The notes beneath the pieces are model-generated. The model was not told the DNA's origin. It saw nothing but the letters and a program-made list of their open reading frames with translations, and did no database searches. A stretch of 64,000 nt of DNA from Bigelowiella natans CCMP2755 (lineage: Eukaryota > Protista > Cercozoa): NCBI GenBank assembly GCA_000320545.1, contig ADNK01001625.1, forward strand, positions 55,316 to 119,315, written 5' to 3'. Position numbers and translations under genes: made by a program. Every line of letters begins with the position of its first letter. Positions within the stretch are counted from its first letter, which is position 1. Shown piece by piece: positions 1 through 39,466 of this stretch.

Positions 1-36
1 AAAACAGCTCCACAAGTCTGGGGAAAAGAACAACAG

Positions 37-2385
37 ATGGCTTTGGATGCTGCGAGGGATGTGCTGAAGTCTTCGTCTTTGTGCATGCCTAAGTTCGAAC
101 ACATTGCCCGTGAGAGTCCATTCCTTGTGGATGTGGATGCGTCTAAATGTGCTGGTGGAGCTACTCTGTCTCAAGTAGTTGATGGGGTGGAGCGCCTCAC
201 ATGTTGCTTCAGCTTCACCTGGCGCAAACATCAGATGAAATGGCACGCAACAAGAAAAGAATTTGACAACGGTGCTAGGAGTCTGGACTGCTTCAGTGTC
301 TTCATCAAGGGATTTCCAACGCGTGCAAGAATGGATGCAAAGGTTGCCATGCACATGGTGGCACATGGACAAGATCAATTGCGCGAACCTCACACCAGAA
401 TCTCCGCAGCTTGTGACTCGTGCATGCTAGTGGGTGTTGAATGCAGAGAGGGCCCGAGCCACAAAAATGCGGATTGCATTGGTAGGCCTGGACACAGTGT
501 TGAAGATGATGCGGATGAAGAAACACTGGTCAATCTCTTCCCTCTCCACCATGCTTCGGCAATGCTCAAATGCTTTGGTGATGAATTGAAAAATGGCACC
601 TGCTTGAGCTGCAACCAACCGGCAGTTGGACACCATCCCACAGATGCAGAGGTTGAACTCACTTGCTCACAACTGTGTCATGATGTGGCGAAGAAGGTGG
701 GCTTTGACGAGTCCAAGTTTCGCATCCTTTTCAAAAGGACAAACACAAAAAACAAATCAAACCAGAGCAAGCTCACTCCTGAAGTTGATGCTGCGCGCTT
801 CGACGGGGACTCAATGATCCACCCGTGCTCCACGTTGGCGCATGAAGCAGATGAACACTTGGAGAACTGCAACACAATGGAACACGGAATGGAGTTCTCA
901 CCTTCACAGTCGGACAGTGTGGAGGTGGAGCTCAAGTGCGATGTGTCATCTGAGCGCCTACCTGCAGAACAACGGGCAGAGTTCACCAAAACATTCGCAG
1001 CTCTAGAAAACAAAGGCAATCCAAATCATGCTCTCACTACGGCACAATGCAAAATTGTGGACAACACCTTGTGCAAGTGCGGCGACTGTGAGAACGACGA
1101 CCACAGTGTCCCTTTGCTCATTGTGGTTCCTGATCAACATCGGACTGAAATCATGGACGCCTACCACATGACGAATCTTGCAAATCACAGATGTGCAAAT
1201 GACATGGCAACAAAAATCCTGCAAGTACATCACTGGAAAGGCTTGACGTGTTCATGCAAAAAACATGTTGCAACCTGTCAGGTGTGCATCAGAACAAAAT
1301 CTCGCATGAAGCAATTGCCTTGCAAGCAGCTACAGATGAGAGGAGCAATGGAAGCCGCATCGATTGATGCCATTGGACGCACAGAAGGAAAGTGTCACTG
1401 CACACTGAATGCGTGCATCTTGTCGATAGGACATGTTTTCGCAAAATGCTGCAAGAAACTTGACGCTAAAGTCATGGCAGAGTTTCTGTTCGACTTCATT
1501 GTCGTGTTTGGTGCACCTCGCAAGATCCTTACTGACCAGGGACCTGAATTTGTGAACAGCGTCATGTCACACTTGAAGAACAGATTCGGTTTTGCAAAAC
1601 TCACCACATCGAGTAAATCCAAAACGGGCAACTCACTAATTGAAAGAAAGAATGGAGTGCTTAATGACGGAACATTGGCACAGCTCACACAACAGTCTGA
1701 ATCGAGACACAATTGGCACAAAGAATTACCTCATGCTGTCTTCTCAGCTAATGCTTTGTTGCCTAATGCTCGAGGAAACTCGCACGCTAAGCTCCTGTTC
1801 GGGTTTCAACCCAAGTTGGAAGGAGACTTAAACGGCAAACGTGCACCTGTGAGAGAGGAGAAAGTCGGAGACGACATTGACTCTCGCATTCAAATTGTGA
1901 AGAAGATGAGACAGTTGTTCCTGACGGACAGATCTGAATGGAGATTCTTGAAAAACTTTGAACGCAATGACAAGATGGGGCAACTAAAACGACACAAAGT
2001 GGGGGATCTAGTGTGGTTGCACCGTGATGAGGACCGCAAAGGGCATCGTGTTGCTCCGCATTTCGCGCTGAAAAAGACAGGCCCCGTCCTGATCACAGCG
2101 AGCATTGGAGATTCCAACACTCACAGAGTGGAAGATCCTGAAACAAGTCATCGAAACGCAGTTCATGCAAAGCACTTGTCTCCCTTTGGCACCTTCACAG
2201 CATCACCGGAAGCTGCAGTGCCACCACAGGATGAAGCGTCTTCGTCGGAGAGTGATCAAGATCTGTTCAATGATTCATCGGGGGATGAGGAAGAAGAGGA
2301 TGATGCTGACATCAGTGCACGCAACATTCTGATGCACACTCGTACCCGCAAGGCACTTGATCGTGGAGCCTTCGTGTCACATTGA
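37..2385 (+). mobile_element. pol: Ty3/Gypsy LTR-retrotransposon pol, 3' part (RNase H + integrase), degenerate by missense hypermutation; continues upstream of the window
   Basis: RNase H motif VDVDASKCAGGATLSQ...HKNADCI; integrase Zn finger H-x6-H...CQVC; core SIDAIG / LTDQGPEF / IERKN (D,D,E); GPY/F-like KVGDLVWL...KKTGPVLI. RNaseH-then-IN order is Gypsy. Only one Tyr in 782 aa. Confidence 0.93.
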
Positions 2386-2483
2386 ACTTGCAATGGAAGT
2401 CCAAGTTTCTGAGTGTTCCGTTCAGTTTGTGCAAGTGCACACAGATTGTTGCATCAAGTTAGTTTTGCGACGTCCGCAAATTC

Positions 2484-2497
2484 AAAAAAGGGGGGAA
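2484..2497 (+). promoter_or_regulatory. Polypurine tract of the LTR retrotransposon
   Basis: aaaaaaggggggaa about 100 nt after the pol stop, immediately followed by TGATGTGACG. Confidence 0.8.
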
Positions 2498-2809
2498 TGA
2501 TGTGACGGCGGAAAATTCAAAGGAATTTGACCGTTGAAAGTGGTCAATCAAGTCAAGTTGATCCCGTTGAAATGCCCTGCAGTTTTGGCAGTTTTGGGTT
2601 CAGTTGGTGCTGTCAGTTGATGAGCAAATTGAGTCATCAAATGGGAAGCAAGTGGTTTGGGAAAACCAAGTTTGTGTGCACGTAGCTGCCTCGATTGGTC
2701 AATGGCAGCGAACCCGCATCTGGCAGTCAGTTCGCTAGAAGTTTGAAAGCGGTCAGTGTGTTTGTTTGAGCGTGCACATGCGTGTGTTCTGAAGTCACCA
2801 ATGTCATCA
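2498..2809 (+). mobile_element. Probable 3' LTR (start 2498 or 2501; end uncertain)
   Basis: Begins with TG directly after the PPT. A possible terminal inverted end ...GTCATCA lies at 2803-2809. The 5' LTR is outside the window, so the end cannot be confirmed. Confidence 0.45.
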
Positions 2810-3028
2810 GGGTTTCATTGTTCATTGGAAAGTTTGATTGTTTTTGCTGAGTGAGCGGCGACGAGCTTGCTAGTTTGGCAGAGACAGAAGCCGACACTGG
2901 GAGGATGCTCTCAGTGGTCGCATGCTGTGCCAGTGTGGCATGGCTAGATGGGGCGGAACACACACACAATGCTTGCTCCAGTGCTGATCATTTTTCTTTG
3001 AGCTCTGGAGCTGAGCTCTGCAGGCCAC

Positions 3029-3057
3029 CTAGCTAGCTAGCTAGCTAGCTAGCTAGT
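3029..3057. repeat. (CTAG)n microsatellite within the TpA-depleted zone
   Basis: ctagctagctagctagctagctagctag. Shorter GCTAGCTAG runs recur at about 5640, 9802, 21299, 21438, 38794, 40921, 41628, 41752 and 47131. Confidence 0.9.
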
Positions 3058-3800
3058 CATGCTGGCATGATCTCTTGATCTGATGACTGCCAAACTAGAC
3101 GATGTCGTCGATCTGGACACGTGCTCGTGGTTGTGTGCGCCAGTCCAGCAGCGTGGTCGTGAAACAACGCATTGTTCACACGGCCCTCGTTTTTTGCAAA
3201 GGCCAGAGCGGCCGATTGACGCATCAGCGGAGGATTCATGAAGGTGCCGTTCCACTGACGTCCAGACGTGTTGATGTGTTCTGTTGTTTCGTGTGGTGCT
3301 CAGCTTGTGCACGCAGTGATCGCTATCAACCTGGCTGGCTAGCTGGCCTAGTGCCAGAGTGGCGCGCAATGCGAAGTTCAGTGTCAACACCCACATCACC
3401 AGAACACACCAACCTGGCAACCATGATCATCTCAATTTTCAATTTCAAACTGTGCACAAACTTCGCGTTTGTCTTGTCCGTGCGTCCCAGCGTTCTGGCG
3501 TTGCCTGGTTGTGCCAGTCTGGCAGCCTGCATGGCTCCAGGCGGTCTGTGCATGGCCAGCTGGAAGTCTGGAAGTGTGGCTCCAGTGTTGTCTCTCAGCA
3601 CACGTGTGTGCAAGTCTGGAAGTTGTCAATTCACAGTGATGTTGATCCTCGCGACCATTTTTTTGTGCGCAGTGACGCATTGCTAGCTAGATCTAGCCAG
3701 ATTGGTCACGTCCAGAGCCGTCAAGCCGTGATGGATGAACAAACCAGCAAGCCCTCCCAATTAGATTACAAGTGCTACAAATCTCGTAAAATCCCCTTTG

Positions 3801-9177: not shown

Positions 9178-10372
9178 TACTAAGTATTTTCTAGGAGGAA
9201 CACAACACATTTTTTAGAAAACGAAATGGAATTTATTGCTGCGATAACTACACATCCTCTCCTCATCACAATGTTCCTTGGCGCACACATGAACTTCCTG
9301 CCACAATCTGCAATTCAATGATCTAGGGTGCCCGAAAAACATCTTGGACATTTTGGCCCAGAACCGTAGAACCTCATCGCAGGAGCGAAACGACCAACGT
9401 TTCACCTCGCGTCGATCACGGTTTTGGCAGTGGTGTCGGACAGGCGCTGCCACATGATCACTGCAATTGTTGCAGATTGGAAGGAGCGTGCAACTGCTAA
9501 CGACTTCGTGGCAATCAAATGAGAGAGGAAGGAGTCGGGGTCGCAGTGCCAGAGTGGATTGCACAGGAGAGCGGACAAAATCGTTTCGCACATTGCAAGT
9601 CTAGAAGTGTCTTGTCACACGACTGTGGAGATGTGGTTTTTCATCATTTTTCATTGTTTGTTGTCAGGACTGGAGGAGAGAGGCGCAAATCAACTGGCTT
9701 CCCATTCGGGGCCTCCACAGCTCGCACGACAAAGTCGCGCAACGAGTCACATGCTAGCATGTTGCCATCTTTCGCCATGATGGGGCGCTCGGTCTTTGCC
9801 ACTAGCTAGCTAGACCAGGCCACACGGTTGCATCTTCACGCATCTAGGCATGCACGTCCACAAAATTGTGACAAAATGTGCACGAGAACACACACCTAGA
9901 TTGGACGACATGTGTGTAGCTCCGGCTGCTGAAGCTGAAGTGCTGGACATTTCTGTTGTTTTGACTGCTGCTGTGCAACGCATGCTGGCATTGTGGCATG
10001 GCGGCTGCTCTAGTGCTTGGTGCGCACAAATCGCATGCATGCGACGGATGTGACAAATGTGCAAAAAAAAAAAGTCGTTGTCATCGCAGTGTAGCTTTGC
10101 AAAGCTGCGACAACTACCGCGCTCAAATTGTAGCGTTTGTTTGTTGATGCGCATGCGTCGAGATCGATGTGGTGGACAGCACGTTCCCGTGCGGCGCTGA
10201 TGACTACGGTACGTGTTGACTAGCTTAGCTGCAGTTGTGATGCACCAGCAGGCTGAGTATGAGACAGACTGAGAAAGAGGGGATCTTCATCAATCATGTC
10301 GACGTAATAGCCATCTCAGGCATAACTTAGCTTGTTAAATTTATACTTTGATTCCTATCAATTGACTATAGT

Positions 10373-36432: not shown

Positions 36433-38345
36433 ACACACAATTGAAGTGTTTTACAATGATTAGTATTTTCTCATGTATCTATCGATCCTCGGAGGAGGAA
36501 AGATTGTAGAGATTTGTTTGGCATTACGATGGTGATGATATATGAATTAAAGTAGCGGCTTGTGTGATTATGATGACGAGCTATTGTTTAAGCCACTAAA
36601 TGCACTAACCATTTTTTCCAACAGAACATCAACGGATTACGAGCAGTGTGAAAGTTTTATGCATCTCCATCTCGGAATTGATGCCAAGGTAGTAACGGGG
36701 ATTATATGTATCCATCATCCGAACGACGACGCATCGAATGATTAACGATTTCTGCCTTCTTCTCAGTATGATTCACCCTTCAGTGCATGCATTTTTATAT
36801 GTCTTCGTCTTCTTCCTCTTCTTCTTCATAGGGTCTCCCGGAAGACTTATGGCCTCAATTTGCCGTTGTAAGGGACTGGAAGGTGATGATGATAGAGAGT
36901 GGTGCTTTCGTGTTTCGTGCTTCATGTTGTCGCGCATCTTTCACATTTGCCAACAACCCACTGTTGTCGCGCACTCTCATCGTTGCCAACGACTCACTCC
37001 GTCCTCATATTCTCCCTTTCCAATATAGAAACCAATAGAATCAGAAGGGAATGTGATGATCGTTGCTATTCCTTCGCTCCTCGACCCATCGTAAGTATAG
37101 CAAGAGAGACAATATCATGATGATGATAATAATGCTTCTTTTTCTTCCTGCACTCCATTCCTTATTGTACTAACACTACGACTCTTGTGGATAGGCTTGC
37201 GCCAGAGGGGAAGCACGTCATTCATGCATACACGGTGGGAATTGTCGTGTGAACATATTATAATAATCATACTTTTATTGTTATCTATTTCTTTGTGATA
37301 TATAAATTTTAATTTTCGACTTTGTATGCTAACACCCATCGGATACTTTGAAGGCTGGAAACGAGCCAATTTCTCTGTGGAAGAGCATGCAAAGGGTAGT
37401 CTACAATCATTATGTAACGACGAAGACGATAACTGATATGAACGAAGAGGAGGAAGTAAAGCGGGGGGGAGAGAAAATCAAAAGATACGAATGAAAAAAC
37501 GAAAAAGCTTTACTTTTATAAATCTCATCGTACATATAAATCTTATAGTACAACGTTATAGTTTTGTTCGCCAAGATCTTGTCCTCGTTCTTAAGATTTT
37601 TATATTCTGACATCATGGTTGATTTTTTTAATTTACTCATTCTTCGCAGGGAACACCTGAATATGAGGCTCTAAAAAAGGAGCGTAGTGAGGTGTTGTGG
37701 AAAGCACTCGAACAGGTATAACGATGTGGTGATTTTTAATGGAAGGAGAAGATGAAAGCAAGTTACTCACCTCAAAAAATCAGACCTCTGATTATCCACA
37801 GGATTCTGTTCTGATAACGATCTCTTTCTTATCTTCTAATCAGTAAACTACATACAATAATGTGATTGACAAGTTGCGCATGAACGCAGGTTATTCCGGA
37901 TGTGCGAAGTCGTGCCGAAGTGGAGATGGTAGGGACACCCCTCACGCATGCGCGCTTTCTACGCCGCAATAATGGCACCTACGGGCCGCTTGTCCGCGCT
38001 GGCGAAGGTTAATCCAAATTTCATCATCATACACATTCAGTTATTTTCCGAGGTTTGTATGGAAAGTTCTCCATTGAGAGACTGGTGGTTTTCGCATTTA
38101 TGGAGAAAATACGTTGAGATTGATGTAATGAGATCTAAAATGTCAAACGAAAACGCAACTTGCACTATGCTACCGCAGGCACGCTACCAGGACACACAAC
38201 ACCAGTCCCAAAGTTATTTGTCTGCGGAGACTCCACATTCCCTGGAATTGGCGTTCCCGCCGTAGCAGCTGGAGGCACAATTTGTGCAAACACGATTTCG
38301 AGCCTCGACTCGCATTTCAAAACATTGGCAGCGATGGGTTTCTGA
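31910..38345 (+). CDS. Plastid-targeted carotenoid isomerase/phytoene-dehydrogenase-like FAD oxidoreductase (CRTISO-like), multi-exon
   Basis: Exon 1 (31910-32281) has a hydrophobic signal plus R/S-rich transit. DVVVIGSGLGGLCCAALLA, FESGPSLFSG, SFMHLHLGIDA, VGTPLTHARFLRRNNGTYGP, LFVCGDSTFPGIGVPAVAAGG. Confidence 0.88.
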
Positions 38346-39466
38346 TTTTCGCAATCTCAATGTGTGAGCTAACACTGTGAACAACATATAGATCTACAAA
38401 CGTAGACATTTTGTGGGTGCATGATGATTGCGATGTGTTGCATCTTGAGCGTAGTTTGTTCACCGCCGATCATTGCCTGATGGCACGCCACTAGGCTAGC
38501 TAGCAGTCTCTGTTTTTCTCACAGATTCTTTTTTTGTGATGGGATTCTTGTGCGCTGTTTTCGTTTGAGCTCACAATGCAAGAACGGCGTGCATCAGTGA
38601 AAATTTGCGCGTGCGGCAACTGTGTGGGTGCGCGCTGATCACATCAGCTCATCACGTGCGTCACAGGTGCGTCCAGTCTGCAATGTCTGGCAGTGGACAG
38701 ACTACGTGTTGTGCGCATCTAGGCATGCTGGCATGCCCAGCTCTTTTTCACAAGTTAGCAAGTGGTGAAGAGCGACGCACTGACGTGGTGCTGGCTAGCT
38801 AGAGTGGGGACCAGGCTAGCAGGGCGTGGGCATCATCGTGTGGTGCACCAGTCACGTCCACTTCGTCGCAAAACTCGCGTTCTTGAGATGCTTGCAGAAA
38901 TCGAACAAAGCTACTGCTAGACCAGCTAGCCTGTGCTGGCAGGTGACGCACGATTGCAATCAAACCAGTCAAGCAATGCTCTCCATCGGACGCATTCACT
39001 TCCAAGGCACCAGAACTCCAATCCTCGCATCGGCGCGGGCACGAAAATTGGACAATGAACAATGAACAATGATGATGAACCACATTTCCAAAATGTAACA
39101 AGGCATTTGCAGTGCATGGACAGCTGTTGCTGGCTGGCAATTGCTGGCTGGTTCGCCTGCAATCTGACTGAGGTGGCCAACAACGTGAGCCTTGTCGCGT
39201 TTTGCGCAGCTACCCCAAGTTTAGGATTTCGTTACTAATCTGTTGTCGCAGCTCTAGGACATCATGAATTACTGTTACAATGAGAACATTCTTCAGCTAC
39301 AAATGTTCTCCAAAAGGCATACTTTTATTTAGTAACGACATTCAATCTCACCAATTTTTAGTCCCACATCGAAAGAGTTCTTGGTTCTGTCAACACCGAA
39401 TTATATTTTAATTGTTCGGGTGTTAATTCTCCGACAACTCCGCACACATTTTAGACCTCCCCTAAT

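Follow-up and report, generated by a model that had tools for sequence, protein, structure and literature searches.

The window analysed here is a 64,000-nucleotide stretch of the Bigelowiella natans CCMP2755 genome (contig ADNK01001625.1; C2112:55316-119315 of the organism's own 91-Mb assembly of 3736 contigs), and it begins inside an inserted Ty3/Gypsy long terminal repeat (LTR) retrotransposon, whose 3' part occupies positions 1-2922. We show that TpA in this element has been converted to TpG or CpA, very probably by a host process that acts after integration, on duplex DNA, symmetrically on both strands and region by region, turning A:T into G:C at TpA; a silent-chromatin or small-RNA mark is its presumed guide. 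The phenomenon itself is not new: a preprint precedes us in what is apparently the same species, and the process is the same one that its authors saw de novo on integrated giant-virus and virophage DNA (Mettrop et al. 2026, bioRxiv 10.64898/2026.01.13.699255). The retrotransposon family provides a confirmation by natural experiment that is independent of mutation-accumulation lines, and it adds the proof from LTR pairs, the end state at saturation, the near-immunity of CTAG, ApT as a minor target, a gradient running from the element ends inward, a spread of about 0.5 kb into the flanks, and small islands at a dispersed repeat.

TpA depletion in the window

Bases 1-2400 contain 27 TpA (observed/expected ratio, o/e, of 0.17), along with elevated TpG (1.73) and CpA (1.47) and a CpG o/e of 0.67. 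Composition alone predicts about 160 TpA in the same bases, which excludes chance. Over bases 1-3750 the count is 46 (o/e 0.19), whereas TpA o/e in the remaining 60 kb of the window is 0.84, a contrast of the kind that an earlier sequence-only reading of this DNA had proposed to look for. The counts given in that reading (27 TpA and no TAT in bases 1-2400, one Tyr in 782 residues) were exact on recount; the 782-aa open reading frame (37-2385) has, besides its single Tyr, 42 His and 32 Cys. CpG is unaffected, with an o/e of 0.67-0.70 in the TA-poor DNA vs 0.78 outside it. The hypermutation is regional, with a normal genome surrounding sharp TA-poor islands. The first of these does end near position 3750, as had been read from the letters, but its last part, 2923-3750, is single-copy flanking DNA and not retrotransposon.

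Direction and strand symmetry of the changes

A genome search found five further full-length copies, with 87-96% identity to the window copy. The six elements were aligned and their columns tallied without any consensus, and polarity was taken from three-state columns and per-column tallies. The copies retain 335, 264, 110, 67 (the window copy), 12 and 5 TA dinucleotides, while TG+CA climbs from 962 to 1283 by the same amount as TA is lost, and CG stays constant at 258-274. We identified 369 dinucleotide positions as TA-class sites, which take in 656 of the 1011 variable columns; the copies thus differ preferentially at TpA vs TpG/CpA, as the hypothesis of TpA hypermutation had required. TA, TG and CA are all present among the copies at 231 TA-class sites, only TG and CA remain at 50 further ones, and TA is invariant at just 3. 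Because TG and CA lie two steps apart and each lies one step from TA, TA must be ancestral and the hits independent. The direction is TA>TG/CA, not that of fungal repeat-induced point mutation (RIP).

The two products occur at about 1:1 in every copy (TG:CA of 154:154, 65:58, 27:31, 143:124, 173:181 and 167:191), in agreement with the proposal that A>G (or T>C) acts on both DNA strands in a TpA context. Their order along each copy is random (runs tests, z -1.1 to +1.3), and hit vs unhit sites are strongly clustered (z -4 to -12 in partly hit copies). Where two copies were both hit and the hit was not inherited, their outcomes agree at about 45-60% of sites; inherited hits are found within the L019-L022 subgroup. 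We show that each TA becomes either TG or CA, with either base pair equally likely and the choice made site by site.

Overall, we count about 1,300 TA>TG/CA hits. The five close copies carry 2-22 private non-TA changes each, against 58-358 TA hits, a gap in per-site rate of roughly three orders of magnitude, and most of these private changes are likewise A:T>G:C. A CG product is essentially never seen at TA-class sites. Near saturation is reached, with up to 98.6% of the TA sites of a copy hit.

Timing of the changes from LTR pairs

An insertion lands with two identical LTRs, and each of the six assembled insertions is bounded by a perfect 5-bp target duplication, all six different, which makes them six independent insertions. 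Among the six LTR pairs, 26 of the 31 differing bases fall at TA-class sites, and the 3' LTR of the window element differs from its own 5' LTR at seven bases, six of them at such sites. At some sites the two LTRs of the same insertion show opposite outcomes, one reading TG and the other CA. Since the LTRs started out identical and are now discordant at TA sites, the process acts on integrated DNA; the comparison of LTR pairs had been suggested from the sequence alone, and its outcome favours the hypothesis that it was meant to test.

Sequence context of the hits

In saturated DNA, CTAG accounts for 67 of the 121 TA that survive, whereas ordinary DNA has 4% of its TA in this context (odds ratio 30, P = 2 × 10−55), and TA that lacks both a C on its 5' side and a G on its 3' side makes up 11% of the survivors vs 63% normally. 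Both outcomes become rarer to about the same degree where a C or G flanks TA on one side (TG:CA of 83:69 at CTAH and 113:111 at DTAG), which argues that the site is read whole in duplex DNA and not strand by strand. We also considered a strand-specific model of CTAG protection, in which a 3' G or a -2 C blocks one strand; it predicts a single outcome at CTAH and at DTAG, and was rejected on the ratios just given.

Outside TpA, ApT is where the private A:T>G:C changes accumulate (26 of 705 sites vs 13 of 2199; odds ratio 6.4, P = 2 × 10−8), and none was found at 1,602 AAA, AAC, AAG, CAC, CAG, GAC and GAG sites. Taken as a whole, CTAG is largely spared and ApT is hit at about 1-2% of the TpA rate.

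Agreement with de novo mutations

In mutation-accumulation lines of B. natans, 230 of 231 de novo mutations in giant-virus and virophage regions were A>G or T>C at TpA, arising at about 6 × 10−7 per site per generation and in only some of the asexual lines (Mettrop et al. 2026). The preprint further reports that TpA-poor coding sequences are enriched for reverse-transcriptase and DDE domains, that there are 124 TpA-poor clusters, that the target, an insertion of nucleocytoplasmic large DNA virus (NCLDV) origin, is single-copy, and that an ADAT2 homologue is a proposed candidate, with RIP named as a comparison (bioRxiv 10.64898/2026.01.13.699255). The search for a protist precedent that the sequence-only reading had advised thus found one in B. 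natans, and our literature search turned up no further paper on TpA hypermutation.

We tallied Table S2 of the preprint by hand. On scaffold 10 it lists 91 A>G events (TAA 32, TAC 22, TAT 34, TAG 3), 119 T>C events (ATA 33, CTA 17, GTA 30, TTA 35, ATG 3, ATT 1) and one C>T (bioRxiv 10.64898/2026.01.13.699255). The ATG and ATT events (scaffold_10: 402688, 416158, 431449 and 450385) are ApT, although the preprint text describes all as TpA; a TpA hit in the same line is only 2 bases away from one of these events, and the four match the minor ApT target that we find in the retrotransposon copies. Additionally, events adjoining a C or G account for about 10% of the hand tally vs about 20% of half-sites in ordinary DNA. 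Hit pairs less than 300 bp apart in one line were of the same type in 8 cases and of opposite type in 9.

By rough reckoning from the preprint's numbers, the 83% TA loss of the window copy would need about 2 × 10^5 generations at about 1 × 10−5 per TA per generation. In that time, the background would be expected to leave less than one change per element, and the 3 private non-A:T>G:C changes seen are of the same order.

Gradient, flanks and islands

The hits follow the geography of the element. The two least-hit copies carry hits in the LTRs and last 0.6 kb but hardly any in the interior (1 of 253 sites at 1.5-5.5 kb in one of them), and in another copy the hit fraction rises from 2/61 through 33/69 to 13/15 toward the 3' end. 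The DNA to either side of two insertions is depleted as well, and TA o/e climbs back there from about 0.2 to more than 1 across 400-600 bp. We show that the process begins close to the LTRs and the ends of the element, works its way inward, and spills about 0.4-0.8 kb into the flanks. The 5' flank of the window element has normal TA. In its 3' flank (2923-3750) the surviving TA lie mostly in CTAG, including a (CTAG)7 at 3029-3056.

Two copies of a dispersed repeat of about 120 bp, unrelated to the retrotransposon, lie in the other two TA-poor islands of the window (Table 1), with the core at about 39043-39116 and an inverted copy near 9584-9665. On a first look, this repeat has more than 300 candidates genome-wide; 20 of 22 other loci likewise sit in TA-poor islands of 0.4-1.5 kb, and its copies show TA/TG/CA three-state columns. 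Beyond the repeat, the island sequence is single-copy by search. All that the three window islands (2923-3750, 9201-10000 and 38301-39200) have in common is a 40-bp repeat core and CTAG runs. The CTAG runs or pairs at 3029-3056, 9800-9815, 38490-38505 and 38795-38820 may consist simply of TA that survived, or may be a genuine island feature.

Two further observations concern single insertions. At L020 (C1679), L021 (C584) and L023 (C1096), stretches of up to 1 kb without any TA adjoin the insertion at one end or at both, which suggests nesting in, or a preference for, already hypermutated regions. In L022 (C550), a nearly untouched stretch of 1.7 kb (about 0.7-2.4 kb) lies between hit DNA; the DNA on its 3' side is heavily hit, near saturation, and the edge there is sharp.

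Independent sequencing runs

Contigs of runs from 2016, 2021 and 2025 were compared with the least-changed copy, bearing in mind that contigs drop rare variants. This copy is present in one contig of the 2016 run with one difference. The 2021 and 2025 DNA runs show 73 and 88 places with A>G or T>C variants, and almost all variants are of these types. Among those listed from the 2021 and 2025 DNA contigs, a list that leaves aside 69 further places, 40 of 40 variants are states of the assembled paralogues; because the same paralogue variants recur in independent DNA runs, the differences between paralogues are real. A 2026 RNA run sampled at about 6% gave only 19 reads on 5.9 kb of the element, which indicates that the family is nearly silent.

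Protein consequences

The full gag-pol frame of 1873 aa is open in four copies, which encode 72, 50, 20 and 5 Tyr, the last being the window copy. The least-changed copies are therefore far from Tyr-free, a result that removes one of the objections that had been raised in advance. Relative to the least-changed copy, the window copy has 195 residue changes and no stop in 1873 codons, chiefly Y>C (34), Y>H (33), I>T (16), I>M (15) and V>A (15), so that the Ile to Thr or Met and Val to Ala changes supposed from the single copy are seen directly. A third copy shows other outcomes at the same tyrosines.

Nine motifs of the window copy had been interpreted as altered, and eight read in the least-changed paralogue as had been guessed: QVHHWKG, KKHVATC, DNTLCK and GKCHCTL correspond there to QVYYWKG, KKYVATC, DNTLYK and GKYHYIL, and ELPHAVF, RHKVGDLVWLH, SNTHRV and EAASIDAIG to ELPYAVF, RYKVGDLVWLH, SNTYRV and EAVSIDAIG. 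The ninth, RLTCCFS, is not settled by this comparison, for the least-changed copy already has CC.

Pfam scores of the window copy are lower than those of a less-changed copy. Since TA>TG/CA is unable to make a stop codon, as had been pointed out and as the intact frame bears out, the element is disabled by about 10% missense change while its frame stays open. The end state of the process is an intact 1873-codon frame nearly stripped of tyrosine, and in this genome an open reading frame is therefore no evidence that an element is active. Caution is needed with genes predicted in TA-poor DNA of B. natans.

Element anatomy and window features

Positions 1-2922 are the 3' part of a single insertion whose gag-pol frame starts upstream of the window, the whole element being about 6.5 kb long; its 5' LTR lies 3.2 kb upstream of the window (G000:C2112:51723-52150). 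The window frame matches RT_RNaseH_2, RT_RNaseH, Integrase_H2C2 and, weakly, rve in Pfam. Along the full frame the order is RVT_1 (866-1017), RT_RNaseH (1086-1199), Integrase_H2C2 (1455-1514) and a weak rve (1561-1612), and this succession of reverse transcriptase, RNase H and integrase is the pol order of Ty3/Gypsy. No Pfam model for a protease or a chromodomain matched in the 1873-aa frame. In gag, upstream of the window, residues 378-432 form a nucleocapsid-like part with CCCH-type zinc fingers in place of the usual retroviral CCHC knuckle. Five bases, AATGA, separate the polypurine tract from the 3' LTR, whose start now reads TGTGAC in the window copy and was ancestrally TGTAAC.

Table 1 Features of the window related to the retrotransposon insertion and the TA-poor islands.
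Feature	Position	Strand	Basis
3' part of gag-pol frame (RNase H, integrase zinc finger, integrase core, C-terminal tail)	1-2385	+	Pfam, copies, TA o/e 0.17
Polypurine tract AAAAAAGGGGGG	2484-2495	+	Read directly; conserved in 6/6 copies (LTR alignment)
3' LTR, 422 bp, TG...CA ends	2501-2922	+	Matches own 5' LTR and LTRs on seven other contigs
5-bp target-site duplication TGCTG	2923-2927	+	Identical five bases directly before 5' LTR
TA-poor flank outside element	2923-3750		TA o/e 0.24-0.26; single-copy in assembly
Second TA-poor island	9201-10000		o/e 0.30, TG+CA 1.56; around short dispersed repeat copy
Third TA-poor island	38301-39200		o/e 0.35, TG+CA 1.63; around ~120-bp dispersed repeat copy

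Mechanism and alternative explanations

We consider it very probable that a regional, strand-symmetric A:T>G:C process of the host rewrote the element at TpA once it was part of the chromosome. As for the chemistry, an enzyme would deaminate adenine to hypoxanthine at duplex TpA, a step that, taken alone, we hold tentatively, as a real contender of slightly less than even standing. Targeting would rely on a silent-chromatin or small-RNA mark rather than on repeat homology as such. Identifying the enzyme was attempted by a six-frame family search of the genome, exon by exon, a procedure that misses micro-exon genes. The A_deamin model gave a single match, an ADAT1-like gene (G000:C2414:14438-15741) with an HAE...PCGDAS motif and long low-complexity inserts, and the dCMP_cyt_deam_1 and MafB19-deam models found the same six loci. 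Within the reach of that search, this is the usual small set of zinc deaminases, and none stands out. Tet_JBP (PF12851), YwqJ-deaminase and OTT_1508_deam had no match in the six-frame search, in which the controls were also silent for two of them.

A route through thymine is the alternative that fares best, and we regard it as unlikely. It supposes that T in the TpA of silenced DNA is modified or oxidised to a base of the 5-hydroxymethyl- or 5-formyl-uracil type, which mispairs with G and gives T>C on either strand. Dinoflagellate 5-hydroxymethyluracil favours TpA and TpC, 5-formyluracil causes A:T>G:C transitions, and at a palindromic TA the sequence does not separate T>C from A>G. The missing Tet_JBP match speaks weakly against this route, given the exon-by-exon search and its silent controls.

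Error-prone patch repair is less probable again, and we give it little credence. Here, a Y-family polymerase would resynthesise silenced DNA and misinsert G opposite T in the WA>WG manner of Pol eta, which gives A>G at TA and AA motifs, and the spatial clustering of the hits, both in the runs tests and as close pairs in the hand-tallied Table S2, would suit such patches. However, there are 0 events at 837 AAA, AAC and AAG sites, and TG and CA are not coordinated by strand, neither along the copies nor in the 8 same vs 9 opposite pairs within single lines. Error-prone resynthesis is disfavoured because AA is never hit and because strand coordination is missing.

ADAR-like RNA editing with a 5'-U preference, or reverse-transcriptase error, fixed in either case by retrotransposition, is highly improbable. 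ADAR favours an A that follows U, and retroelements do have an RNA stage, but the different hits in the two LTRs of one insertion exclude both versions. Both strands are hit equally, moreover, and so are single-copy flanks and a repeat that is not a retroelement, as well as the single-copy viral insertion of the mutation-accumulation lines (Mettrop et al. 2026). Finally, that TA poverty is ancestral (through codon bias or horizontal origin), or that a reverse, RIP-like CpA>TpA process mutated the TA-rich copies, finds nothing in its favour beyond the view of a single copy and is hardly tenable, given the range from 335 to 5 TA among copies 89-98% identical, three-state sites that require TA as intermediate or ancestor, and TA-rich copies whose frame is open, with 72 Tyr at positions conserved in Gypsy, higher Pfam scores and no RIP-type stops.

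Several points weigh against a duplex adenine editor of the host acting region by region. TA is palindromic, so an A>G change on either strand and a T>C change on the opposite one would look alike in any comparison of sequences, and the family search assigned no gene to the putative mutator enzyme. Among the 40 listed variants of the later DNA contigs there are no new hits in the Gypsy family since the 2012 assembly. The 830-bp TA-poor flank of the window element is one-sided, the 5' flank being normal, and may be an older island or an old element rather than the result of spread; likewise, the sharp edge between clean and saturated DNA in L022 could reflect recombination or an assembly chimera and not regional action.

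With these reservations, the copies put constraints on the enzyme sought: it works on integrated duplex DNA with a random strand at each site, spares CTAG, takes ApT weakly and AA, AC or AG never, proceeds from the ends inward and spreads about 0.5 kb. One possible but more speculative view, for which we claim limited confidence, is a new enzyme activity that reads duplex TpA as a symmetric four-base site (DTAH : CTAH/DTAG : CTAG = 1 : 0.5-0.7 : 0.15), with ApT as a weak second palindromic target, and that is loaded on silent chromatin, with LTRs and short dispersed repeats as its starting points and a spread of a few nucleosomes; the mutator would then be a natural A:T>G:C editor of duplex DNA that takes its guidance from chromatin.

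Comparison with known systems

The closest counterpart is the B. natans process of Mettrop et al. (2026), which shares its signature with the changes described here: an exclusively A:T>G:C conversion at TpA that affects both strands, is regional and is directed at foreign DNA. The viral region of the preprint is only 1.8-fold depleted, whereas the retrotransposon described here is near saturation. The preprint text does not contain the words LTR, retrotransposon, Gypsy or CTAG, and its analysis extends neither to copies of retrotransposons and their LTR pairs nor to islands below 3 kb or contexts beyond TpA (bioRxiv 10.64898/2026.01.13.699255).

Fungal RIP resembles the process in being a DNA-level, regional, near-saturating transition of transposons in a dinucleotide context, active after integration and leaking into flanks. 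Unlike RIP, which changes C to T at CpA and so makes TpA and stops, the process here destroys TpA and leaves 1873 codons without a stop. RIP is also premeiotic and needs duplicated sequence, whereas here asexual lines and single-copy DNA are hit (Mettrop et al. 2026). The single-copy flank 2923-3750 and the unique flanks of other insertions were likewise hit without the duplication that RIP requires. The earlier reading of a TpA hypermutation that inactivates the element is supported, with two qualifications: induction by repeats is not borne out, as single-copy DNA is affected, and the preprint has precedence.

APOBEC3 and ADAR share with it a context-specific transition hypermutation that disables retroelements, by a chemistry that in their case is deamination. 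They act before integration, on cDNA or RNA and with a one-strand bias, so that the two LTRs would carry identical edits, in contrast to the post-integration, strand-symmetric action and discordant LTRs seen here. Decay of 5-methylcytosine at CpG is similar in that a palindromic dinucleotide of silenced repeats is lost to two symmetric products (CG>TG/CA vs TA>TG/CA), but it concerns another dinucleotide and moves base composition in the opposite direction, and CpG is unaffected in our element.

To our knowledge, very few DNA-level hypermutation defences exist outside fungi and no other drives A:T to G:C, and we know of no natural duplex-DNA adenine deaminase. Precedents for DNA deamination are the duplex-DNA cytidine deaminase toxin DddA and the TadA-derived adenine base editors with their 5'-T preference. 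Beside these, a natural TpA-specific A:T>G:C activity on duplex DNA would, if true, be relevant to base editing.

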